Source of the DNA: Macrostomum lignano
Taxonomy: Eukaryota
Assembly: GCA_002269645.1 (NCBI GenBank)
Contig: NIVC01004019.1
Location: 1 to 49,595, forward strand
DNA length: 49,595 nucleotides
Direction: 5' to 3'
The position numbers were made by a program, and so were the translations under genes. The notes beneath the pieces are model-generated. The model searched no databases. It saw only the letters and a list, made by a program, of their open reading frames with translations, and was not told the origin of the DNA. This document shows, in pieces, positions 15,667-16,678 of the stretch (within the stretch, counting starts at the first letter, position 1; the number at the start of each line of letters is the position of its first letter).

Positions 15667-16546
15667 CAGTTGTTCCTCAATCTTTCGAAAGAGGCTGGAC
15701 TTTATCTTAAGGCTTCATCAGGATTGACCAGATCCTTCAGCCCCACCCCCATTAAGTCTCTGAACCTTCTCCATATCCTTGTCAACTTCGTTCGGACTTA
15801 GGAGCTTGGCTGCGGATTTCCACCATGTCCTCAAGCTTGTTACCATCGAACCATAGGTTCGCGGACGAAGTCCGATTGGGAACAGGAATTACCTGTGTTC
15901 CTTCAGAAGATTTCTCAACTGAAGTGGTACTTGAGGCTGTTATTGACGTACTAGAATCGGACGGAGTTCCCGCAATTTGAAGGTGTCGCCAATCACTAAG
16001 CACTTGTTTAATGTTGGTTATAATGTTTTTGTATTGATCACCATAAAGAAATTTCAATGCAAATTCTCCTGTTATAAGGGTGATTCCATTGTCTAGTAAA
16101 ATATTCTTAGGTTCCTTTGTAGTTCTATTGATGCATACATAATACAACTGATAGGTGGGATAAGAATTTTTATAGTCTAATAGTTTCTGATAATTCCTTT
16201 CACGACTTGATGAATTGTCCGTGTTATCAGAAGATTTAAGCTCTAATGCAATCTTTCGCTCAACGTGAACCAGGTCTATCTTTCTTACCTTCTCGAATCC
16301 AAAATAATTTTCTGCTAATATTTCATATAGTCTGCCTAGTCTCATTTGAATAACTTTAATCTTGTGTGAAATTATTAACTCTTCTTGGAAAAGATCATGA
16401 AGAATTTGATCATGCCCAACCTTATCATCAATTGGTTTCAGAAGAATTTCTCGAATTGTTTGCTCCATTTTTACTATAGAAACTTTAACAAGTGCTTATT
16501 TGATGACTAGCAAGGACATTGACTTCCTCACTCAGGCCACTACGTA
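15667..16546 (-). ncRNA. Group I self-splicing intron, IC1-like, 880 nt, with an embedded endonuclease ORF
   Basis: Core elements: P AAATTGCGGGAA (15978-15967), Q AATCCGCAGC (15818-15809), R GTTCAGAGACTTAA (15765-15752), S TAAGATAAAGTC (15709-15698). The P3, P4, P7, P8, P9 and P5abc pairings are satisfied. The 5' exon ends in U paired to an IGS G, and the intron ends in G. Removal restores an in-frame PLA2 motif. Confidence 0.95.
15782..16468 (-). CDS. Intron-encoded PD-(D/E)XK restriction-like endonuclease (putative homing endonuclease)
   Basis: Intact 228-aa ORF with its own TAAAAATG start. KVIQMRLGRLYE...KIDL...ALELKSSDNTDNSSS...YQKL gives an E..D..ExK pattern. The last ~70 codons overlap the ribozyme core. 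Confidence 0.75.
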   Translation of the reverse strand: MEQTIREILLKPIDDKVGHDQILHDLFQEELIISHKIKVIQMRLGRLYEILAENYFGFEKVRKIDLVHVERKIALELKSSDNTDNSSSRERNYQKLLDYKNSYPTYQLYYVCINRTTKEPKNILLDNGITLITGEFALKFLYGDQYKNIITNIKQVLSDWRHLQIAGTPSDSSTSITASSTTSVEKSSEGTQVIPVPNRTSSANLWFDGNKLEDMVEIRSQAPKSERS

Positions 16547-16678
16547 ACCTGCAAAAGAATACCCTGGAATATGAAGTTCTCCTGGGTATTTTCCAGTGGC
16601 GAAGATGGGTGGTAGTTTTGTTATAGCTGACTGAATATCTAAAGCATTTCCTAGAAATAATGGTTTACTGAAGGCCAT
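16547..16678 (-). CDS. Exon 1 of the PLA2-integrase gene (44 aa)
   Basis: ATG at 16678 (TAAAATG). MAFSKPLFLG...GKYPGELHIPGYSFAG, 132 nt, joins in frame to PGTNLDKRL. Confidence 0.9.

Follow-up and report, generated by a model that had tools for sequence, protein, structure and literature searches.

A group I intron encoding an Eco47II-family nuclease splits a Gly-Pro codon pair in a Polinton-like virus that lacks GGNCC

How can a virus-like element carry the gene of a restriction endonuclease with no detectable methyltransferase, and why should that gene be placed in an intron? These questions are raised by contig NIVC01004019.1 of the Macrostomum lignano assembly GCA_002269645.1, whose whole stretch of 49,595 nucleotides (positions 1 to 49,595 of the forward strand, hereafter the window) was analysed in this study. 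The window holds a Polinton-like virus integrated in repeat-rich eukaryotic DNA. The integrase gene of this virus, in which a phospholipase A2 (PLA2)-like region precedes an rve integrase, is interrupted within GGTCC by a group I intron that encodes an Eco47II-family nuclease, and GGNCC is absent from the whole element. We consider it rather probable that a methylase-free restriction enzyme residing in a group I intron is used here as a homing endonuclease, with self-immunity achieved through loss of its site.

The intron, its nuclease and the missing pentanucleotide

The interrupted gene is read on the minus strand from two open reading frames (ORFs), whose coordinates are collected with those of the other features in Table 1. 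Exon 1 starts at 16678, reads M-A-F-S ... H-I-P-G-Y-S-F-A-G before a stop and aligns collinearly with the N-terminal ends of L010, L017, L050 and P0050, which are intron-less relatives. Exon 2 continues with P-G-T-N-L-D-K-R-L ... H-D-K-N-Y and then the rve integrase (rve 40.2 bits; Phospholip_A2_4 23.3 bits, slightly under the cut-off of 23.9), and a search with the integrase recovered 939 homologues, many of which match both PF08398 and PF00665. With T16547 as the last nucleotide of exon 1 and C15666 as the first of exon 2, the spliced junction is GGT|CC, in agreement with the intron-less relatives, and the intron lies at the Gly (GGT)/Pro (CCG) boundary of the conserved calcium-binding PLA2 loop. 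A PLA2-rve-chromodomain protein of the coral Oculina patagonica (P0117) shares 38% identity with the window integrase, indicating that the PLA2-integrase fusion reaches elements of animal genomes.

Several features indicate that the interruption is a real group I intron, and self-splicing of the transcript is predicted. Rfam RF00028 matches the minus strand at 15676-16059 with 88.9 bits (gathering score 50, E 7e-22), aligning P3-P9. P1 is formed by the exon sequence CAGGU (16551-16547) and the internal guide GCCUG (16537-16533), the splice site being marked by a U.G pair, and a compensatory change separates the CAGGU/GCCUG of the window, L047 and L048 from the UUAGGU/GCCUAA of L001-L004 and L053. 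RNAalifold applied to seven homologous cores recovered P3, P4, P5, P6 and P8, with 19 of the 66 pairs changed on both sides and a covariation term of -7.45 kcal/mol. The terminal nucleotide G15667 stands directly before exon 2, and a terminal G is found in all seven loci whose 3′ end is on the contig (that of L001 ends earlier). The same insertion site is used in eight loci, namely the window, L001-L004, L047, L048 and L053. A spliceosomal intron was also considered and was rejected: no GT-AG pair restores the Y-x-G-P-G loop, and the Rfam match together with P1 decides the type.

Among the related introns, that of L047 matches RF00028 with 65.3 bits, and those of L002-L004, L048 and L053 are missed by this model even with E up to 1 (0.01 for L048 and L053). 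The missed introns are short and without the P9 hairpin, and they align to the window core and covary with it. Since such short introns escape Rfam, counts of group I introns in these viruses that are based on Rfam only are probably too low.

The nuclease ORF lies between P1 and P3, starting after the first 78 nt of the intron, and matches RE_Eco47II (PF09553) over residues 24-157 with 29.2 bits against a gathering score of 25.9. In an AlphaFold model computed with 15 homologues, the predicted local distance difference test score (pLDDT) exceeds 90 for residues 1-166 and is below 50 for residues 167-228, a disordered tail that is read through P3-P6 of the ribozyme. D65 is nearly invariant and E76 and K78 are invariant among the 15 homologues, a TDNSSSR motif is present, and the catalytic D65/E76/K78 are located on the adjacent strands 66-68 and 73-78 of the model. 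The best Foldseek match in the PDB is EcoO109I (1wtd/1wte; E 1.5e-4, template modelling score 0.52 over the whole query, tail included), and the other best fold matches are restriction endonucleases too. A ratio of nonsynonymous to synonymous substitution rates (dN/dS) of 0.18 at dS 0.5 (L003 versus L004 and L053) indicates that the nuclease domain is under purifying selection. No significant match was returned by searches of NCBIfam, of the PDB by sequence and of BFVD by fold, and the exact protein is absent from the contig index.

Family and fold together identify the protein, as far as can be judged from its sequence, as an Eco47II-family type II restriction endonuclease, and it most probably cuts GGNCC. 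This specificity is suggested by the avoidance of all four words across the genomes with the gene, the fold match to EcoO109I and the insertion inside GGTCC, and the disappearance of a 5-bp word throughout the element speaks for a short recognition site. No methyltransferase domain was found in ORFs of at least 100 amino acids (aa) across the element, in ORFs of at least 60 aa in 3040-7480, or among the called genes on record for L002, L004, L050, L053 and L064; the cognate methyltransferase of a type II restriction-modification (R-M) system is thus not part of the element as detected.

A script count found no GGNCC in positions 1-17376, the first sites being at 17377, 18727 and 18950. Markov models of orders 0, 1, 2 and 3 predict 18.6, 19.1, 17.2 and 12.4 sites, respectively, in 1-17203 (36.3% G+C), where the control words CCNGG (n=20) and GGCC (n=17) occur at expectation. 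GGNCC is the most depleted of 136 strand-merged XXNYY patterns (0 versus 19.1, Poisson P 5e-9), the runner-up having P 1e-4. Both GGWCC (11.9 expected) and GGSCC (7.2 expected) are missing from the element, which argues that the element avoids GGNCC whatever its middle base and its flanking bases. The remainder of the window beyond the element contains 67 sites against 63-87 expected. The absence is real and far beyond chance. Since Gly-Pro is always encoded as GGN-CCN, the ORFs of the window element are without any GP dipeptide (0 versus 6.3 expected in 3738 residues), and PG occurs ten times.

Much of this picture had been drawn in an initial annotation made from the letters of the window alone. 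It had counted by eye zero GGNCC in 1-17203, where about 15 would be expected, had seen CCNGG and GGCC recur in the element and had placed host-side sites at 17377, 18727 and 18950; the script confirms the zero count and the recurrence of the control words, gives exactly the same host-side positions, extends the site-free run to 17376, and brackets the expectation with 12.4-19.1. Its PD-(D/E)XK pattern is borne out by the conserved residues and the fold matches, and the resemblance to the Eco47II/Sau96I type that it proposed by a Pfam score for the Eco47II family above the gathering threshold. The GGT|CC junction that it proposed is the one found in intron-less relatives, its argument that a Gly-Pro pair split by the intron cannot lose the site synonymously holds, and the purge of GGNCC that it postulated is the strongest depletion among the 136 patterns.

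Relatives with and without the intron

Forty-one metagenomic homologues of the nuclease were recovered, many of them with a precomputed PF09553 match. Relatives come from the assemblies ERZ25070786, ERZ25070917 and ERZ25068511. In L001-L004, L047, L048 and L053, exon 1, the intron with its nuclease and exon 2 follow one another as in the window. In the intron-bearing loci exon 1 ends in AGGT and exon 2 starts with CCN-GGN-ACN (seven loci with that end), and the junction is GGT|CC wherever both intron ends are on the contig. A full nuclease domain is retained in six of the eight intronic copies, with one ORF break each in L001 and L002. A different arrangement is found in L050, from a marine metagenome, in which the nuclease gene is free-standing, without an intron, and overlaps the start of an intact PLA2-integrase gene by 8 nt. 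The PLA2 loop of L050 is G-T-G (GGA ACC GGT), so that no GGNCC occurs there; this Pro to Thr change has a counterpart in L006, where Pro to Ala at the loop removes the site. ORFs of PDDEXK_3, an unrelated PD-(D/E)XK family, are present in L048 (457-594) and L064 (19733-20116).

Counted over the element part of each locus, GGNCC is absent from L047 (4.8 expected), L048 (1.1), L002 (5.1), L001 (2.7), L004 (4.7), L050 (8.4) and L053 (8.7), and occurs once in L003 (3.0 expected). When these nuclease-bearing relatives are pooled (66.9 kb without the window), one site stands against 38.6 expected, and GGNCC is again top-ranked of the 136 patterns (P 7e-16). In L001 and L002 the GGNCC sites stop where the AT-rich element starts. 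In more distant integrase relatives whose contigs showed no nuclease gene, namely L005, L017, L018 and L023-L046, GGNCC occurs at expectation. L003 contains an inserted pol ORF of a long terminal repeat (LTR) retrotransposon (6343-9975; protease, reverse transcriptase, RNase H and integrase), which brings two GGNCC of its own.

The loops of intron-less relatives are contiguous, such as Y-N-Y-L-G-P-N-T in L009 and L012 and F-T-G-P-G-T in L010, L017 and L018, among others, and thereby fix the exon junction at G|P. GGN|CC spans the insertion point in L009, L010, L012, L017, L064 and L065, and is split in all eight intron-bearing loci. The Gly-Pro codon pair is the only GGNCC on the contigs of L009, L010 and L012. 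The most telling case is that of L064 and L065, each of which has about 12 kb of element with exactly one GGNCC, at the insertion point (CTT GGG|CCA GGT and CTT GGA|CCC GGT, respectively), and no nuclease gene was found on their contigs. Assembly ERZ25070786, the source of both, also contains the intron-bearing L001 and L003, and in a stretch of 1770 nt in the integrase-capsid region downstream of the site both share 96.7% identity with L003. The full-length proteins P0050 and P0054 of these two contigs, recovered in the integrase search, match the L003-type exon-2 protein almost residue for residue.

Exon 1 of L064 and L065 is 97-100% identical to that of intron-bearing alleles, except in its last 30 nt (63-65%), where about ten mostly synonymous differences track the presence of the intron: exon 1 ends with TAT AAY TAT TTA GGT in intron-bearing and with TAC AAC TAT CTT GGR in intron-less alleles. 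This cluster fits P1 pairing requirements, co-conversion or both, extra contacts being another option. Downstream of the insertion site, the identity gradient expected of a co-conversion tract is patchy, and a clear cluster is seen only in the 30 nt upstream. In the integrase tree (neighbour-joining, with no support values), two intron-bearing clades are separated by intron-less lineages, and L050 is sister to the window and L047. The intron thus appears to be distributed patchily among close relatives, as homing endonucleases are.

A scan of IMG/VR with the nuclease alignment added ten loci (29-35% identity, contigs of 16-248 kb), several of which are named as giant-virus metagenome-assembled genomes; in one of the giant-virus homologues, L054, PF09553 scores 51.8 bits. 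A C5 cytosine methyltransferase gene adjoins the nuclease gene in L055, L056, L057, L059, L060 and L063 (E 1e-66 to 1e-82), and these six loci are complete R-M systems by gene content. GGNCC is the most depleted pattern in L063 (61% G+C; 36 versus 130 expected, P 1e-22), and the AT-rich giant-virus loci are mildly depleted (33 versus 55 summed). The nuclease family is thereby tied to GGNCC in viruses of eukaryotes.

Architecture of the element and its flanks

The double jelly-roll capsid gene marks the element as Polinton-like, and the capsid, A32-type ATPase and rve integrase genes occur together on one element, a combination expected of Polintons and Polinton-like viruses. A search of IMG/VR with the capsid protein returned no relatives. 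Gene order is common to the window element, L002, L053 and L064. The nuclease gene, both integrase exons and the capsid gene are intact in the window copy, whereas three other genes are broken. The Endonuclease VII-domain gene has at least three frame changes, as tblastn with the intact L050 and L053 homologues needs three frames; the ATPase gene has one, the intact L002 and L053 homologues matching over two frames; and the primase-helicase gene is divided among at least three separate ORFs, hence at least two breaks. The Endonuclease VII-domain protein is about 1000-1150 aa long in relatives, and its L065 counterpart matches DNA_pol_B_2 (PF03175), so that it is possibly a divergent protein-primed polymerase; Pfam gave no DNA_pol_B_2 match in the window. 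Discoidin domains, one of which is encoded in the element, have been found mainly in Polinton-like viruses of Rhizaria and Glaucocystophyceae (PMC12220804).

Table 1. Features of the window and of the relative L050 with a free-standing nuclease gene
Feature	Locus	Position	Strand	Basis or remark
Run without GGNCC	Window	1..17376	none	Site count; spans the virus-like element
Large Endonuclease VII-domain gene, broken	Window	565..3436	+	Pfam Endonuclease_7 and tblastn
Primase-helicase gene (Prim-Pol, PriCT_2, D5_N), fragmented	Window	4360..5650	-	Pfam on separate small ORFs
RING-finger ORF	Window	6753-7022		Within the element
F5/8 type C (discoidin) ORF	Window	8741-9064		Within the element
A32-like packaging ATPase gene, broken	Window	11476..12196	-	Weak Pfam Pox_A32 match
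Double jelly-roll major capsid protein gene, intact	Window	12218..13582	-	Pfam DJR-like_dom, E 1.7e-13
Exon 2, PLA2-like remainder (P-G-T-N-L-D ... H-D) and rve integrase	Window	14440..15666	-	Intact 408-codon frame
Group I intron, 880 nt, between GGT and CCG	Window	15667..16546	-	Rfam RF00028 and homologous introns
Ribozyme core P3-P9	Window	15667..15998	-	Rfam alignment
Intron ORF, 228 codons	Window	15782..16468	-	Pfam PF09553
Eco47II-family PD-(D/E)XK domain, residues 1-166	Window	15971..16468	-	Pfam and AlphaFold model
P1 helix	Window	16533..16551	-	Read from the sequence
Exon 1, PLA2-integrase gene	Window	16547..16678	-	ORF; 44 codons, end ...Y-S-F-A-G, last codon GGT
HNH_4 ORF	L050	1302-1850		Upstream of the free-standing nuclease gene
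Free-standing Eco47II-like gene	L050	1856-2392
Intact PLA2-integrase gene	L050	2385-3578
Second, divergent Eco47II-like ORF	L050	4148-4654		26% identity to the window nuclease, no Pfam match

Homology to the closest relative, L047, stops at 16681, and the right end of the element lies within 16679-17376. A palindrome at 17103-17203 (101 nt; 50+50 nt, 78% complementary) has no second copy in the window; a boundary at its end, 17203, is plausible, and the left end of the window showed no matching terminal repeat. Within the element, 7437-8024 comprises a hairpin, whose 31-nt arms are 97% complementary and enclose a 39-nt loop, and after it a 132-bp tandem repeat (3.6 copies). The two overlap an ORF at 7479-7979 with a weak HIRAN match, and the hairpin gives sub-threshold microRNA-like Rfam matches. 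A comparable palindrome occurs at 8257-8390 of L053 (MIR7504, 87 bits, both strands). On the host side, an ORF on the minus strand (17229-17468) contains an adenylate-kinase-like P-loop segment, and dense micro- and minisatellite arrays (periods 4-212, up to 108 copies) fill 17900-43200.

Possible roles of a methylase-free nuclease

The reading that we favour, homing by a restriction enzyme whose carrier has lost the site, would work as follows. The enzyme would cut GGNCC, and the virus family would be immune through removal of every GGNCC from its genome and hence of every Gly-Pro from its proteins. The Gly-Pro of the PLA2 loop could be kept because the intron splits the pair in the DNA and splicing would restore it in the mRNA. 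As the genomes of the family are purged, the only GGNCC that an intron-less member offers would be the insertion point; a single cut there would be repaired with an intron-bearing copy as template, and the intron would be gained in the process, which is homing. The target would thus be made unique by purging of the genome and not by a long recognition sequence. Other possible substrates would be unmethylated GGNCC in the host, in unrelated Polinton-like viruses and in giant viruses without the matching methylase. The free-standing copy of L050 suggests that the enzyme can persist without the intron, which makes a wider role against other DNA plausible. A broader version of this scheme, possible but put forward only tentatively, is that a lineage of Polinton-like viruses took up the nuclease half of a giant-virus-type R-M system and runs it without its methylase, with immunity by a complete site loss that forces out Gly-Pro; the intron would be kept because the PLA2 loop could not otherwise preserve its Gly-Pro, and so be useful to its carrier and not purely selfish, and one enzyme would serve both for homing within the family and as a weapon against host, rival and giant-virus DNA.

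The comparison of intron-plus and intron-minus relatives that the initial annotation had called for gave a sharper result than it had predicted: intron-less alleles have GGNCC exactly at the insertion point, and L064 and L065 are GGNCC-free except for this junction site. Its overall interpretation stands in the enzyme family, the purge, the split Gly-Pro and the junction site, and fails in the proposed addiction, by which loss of the intron would be suicidal. Intron-less alleles with an intact site exist beside intron-bearing ones in the same assembly, and precise loss of the intron would also remove the nuclease gene, which leaves addiction unsupported. Nor is the intron the only way to break the site, as had been claimed, since the loop substitutions of L050 and L006 are other ways out. 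The group I type of the intron, the free-standing enzyme in one relative and the giant-virus homologues with C5 methyltransferases had been missed.

It may be asked whether homing is needed at all. The solitary enzyme could mainly degrade host or competitor DNA, the intron being a vertically inherited safe harbour and a patch on an unavoidable GGNCC, a role likened to that presumed for the R-M systems of algal giant viruses. Such a view accommodates L050, with its free-standing enzyme, intact integrase, no intron and no GGNCC in 9.1 kb (6-8.4 expected), as well as the normal GGNCC frequency of the host flank and a divergence of intron and integrase that is roughly commensurate between clades. 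It is nevertheless unlikely in our judgement: one assembly contains intron-plus and intron-minus alleles that are nearly identical, the insertion site is where synonymous differences concentrate, the intron is patchy on the integrase tree, and the single site remaining in intron-less copies is the insertion point. Degradation of other DNA and homing are compatible and do not exclude each other. Selection against GGNCC might also be imposed from outside, by co-infecting giant viruses whose Eco47II-type R-M systems restrict Polinton-like viruses; the enzyme of the element would then be a later passenger, affordable without a methylase as the sites were already gone, and may not shape the genome. 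The ten IMG/VR loci with homologues, six of them with a neighbouring C5 methylase, the depletion in L063, the proposed use of R-M systems against virophages (PMC7253447) and the purged state of L064 and L065, which have neither intron nor enzyme, all agree with this idea. However, complete absence of GGNCC, as opposed to a reduction, goes together with having the nuclease gene or with being very closely related to loci that have it. Integrase relatives at a greater distance show the expected number of sites, the position of the intron exactly inside GGNCC is left unexplained, and a meeting of these elements with those giant viruses is conjectural; we regard an outside origin of the pressure as quite improbable.

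Two further explanations carry less weight still. If the nuclease and intron were inactive in a dead endogenous copy, the missing sites would be mere history, as might be suggested by the three broken genes of the window copy, the shortened nuclease ORFs of L001 and L002 and the state of L003, with its retrotransposon insertion and one new GGNCC. Yet the nuclease gene, integrase exons and capsid gene of the window are intact, all conserved nuclease residues are kept at a dN/dS of 0.18, the ribozyme covaries and six of eight intronic copies have the full nuclease domain, which together render a mere relic very improbable. A compositional artefact of low G+C, dinucleotide or codon bias has a negligible probability. 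With 36% G+C, a third-order Markov model does lower the expectation to 12.4, but zero is far under every model, CCNGG and GGCC are at expectation, and none of the 136 patterns is more depleted than GGNCC, whether the window or the independent 67 kb from relatives is considered; composition as the cause is refuted by these expectations, control words and rankings.

Several points weigh against homing with immunity by site loss. That the enzyme cuts GGNCC, that the intron splices in vivo and spreads by homing, and that host or competitor DNA may be attacked are what we infer from the sequences. The PF09553 match exceeds its threshold by only about 3 bits and covers model positions 54-186 of 202, and the expected GGNCC counts of single AT-rich relatives are low one by one. 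The methylase-paired giant-virus homologues provide an alternative source of selection against GGNCC, and L064 and L065 are such close kin of intron-bearing copies that their site loss is not independent evidence of ongoing selection. Three broken genes indicate that the window copy is decaying, so that its site-free state may be inherited and not maintained. The host would have to tolerate the gene although its flank has GGNCC at normal frequency. Finally, Rfam places the 3′ end of the intron at 15676, 9 nt upstream of 15667 and equally in frame, which would add three residues; this end was rejected, as P-G-T immediately follows G in every intron-less allele and in the relatives whose contigs include the 3′ end.

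The closest functional parallel to homing by this nuclease is I-Ssp6803I, a PD-(D/E)XK homing endonuclease of a cyanobacterial group I intron, which acts as a tetramer on a 23-bp pseudo-palindrome with variable fidelity (PMC3384342). Both are intron-encoded, have a restriction-enzyme fold and have the intron-less allele as target, putatively so in the window. In contrast to I-Ssp6803I, which resembles PvuII and Hjc, the window enzyme is a member of a true type II family, apparently with a 5-bp site; I-Ssp6803I was not among its top 50 Foldseek PDB matches, and the two are unrelated beyond the superfamily. Bacterial Eco47II homologues, such as Eco47II-DCM4 of Metamycoplasma hominis, have GGNCC as their assigned site and a C5 methylase partner (PMC10305163). 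The window protein shares their Pfam family PF09553, but its domain is shorter (about 166 aa) and resides in an intron of a eukaryotic virus-like element, and whereas the bacterial systems combine nuclease and C5 methyltransferase and are protected by methylation, the element, in which no methyltransferase was found, would be protected by the absence of sites. EcoO109I, the best structural match to the model, cuts RG^GNCCY to leave a 3-nt 5′ overhang (PMC7337904) and so contains the GGNCC core; it is, however, a larger protein with 12-14% identity that needs the flanking R/Y, while the element avoids GGNCC whatever its flanks.

Among viruses of eukaryotes, the giant-virus R-M systems (PMC7253447; L055-L060 and L063) have a homologous nuclease and, in L063, depletion of GGNCC, but their nuclease stands beside a C5 methyltransferase, whereas that of the Polinton-like viruses stands alone. 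A free-standing endonuclease gene beside its target gene has been proposed as the precursor of intronic endonuclease genes, in a 2009 work as cited in PMC11296320. L050 resembles this state in that a free-standing nuclease gene immediately precedes the gene interrupted in relatives, and differs from it in that no intron accompanies the free gene and the target pair has changed to Gly-Thr-Gly. RF00028 matches were tabulated in 2025 for Polinton-like viruses of Paulinella micropora (53), Desmodesmus (2) and Rhodomonas lacustris (44); that table gives intron matches only, with no intron-encoded nuclease, Eco47II or site avoidance (PMC12220804). No link of Eco47II to virophages or Polinton-like viruses was found in the literature searched. 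Phages are known to lose short palindromic sites as a protection against type II nucleases (PMC6286503), and the element differs from them in that the site-avoiding genome itself encodes the nuclease and keeps one site split by an intron. Site avoidance and giant-virus R-M systems were known separately.

Homing enzymes recognize long (about 14-40 bp), tolerant sites that are unique in a genome, and restriction enzymes recognize short, exact sites and need a methylase; the two share folds and have been seen as opposite solutions. The present element suggests a third route, in which a short site is made unique by purging the carrier genome and an intron splits the copy that a protein demands. 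This reading predicts that a genome with the nuclease has zero GGNCC and one without the intron has exactly one. If true, this would be the first case of a classical type II restriction family with a member carried by an intron in a virus of eukaryotes, and selection on a 5-base word would have been so strong that a whole viral proteome lost a dipeptide. A link would also be made between Polinton-like viruses and the R-M systems of giant viruses, which bears on the competition of viruses inside one cell.

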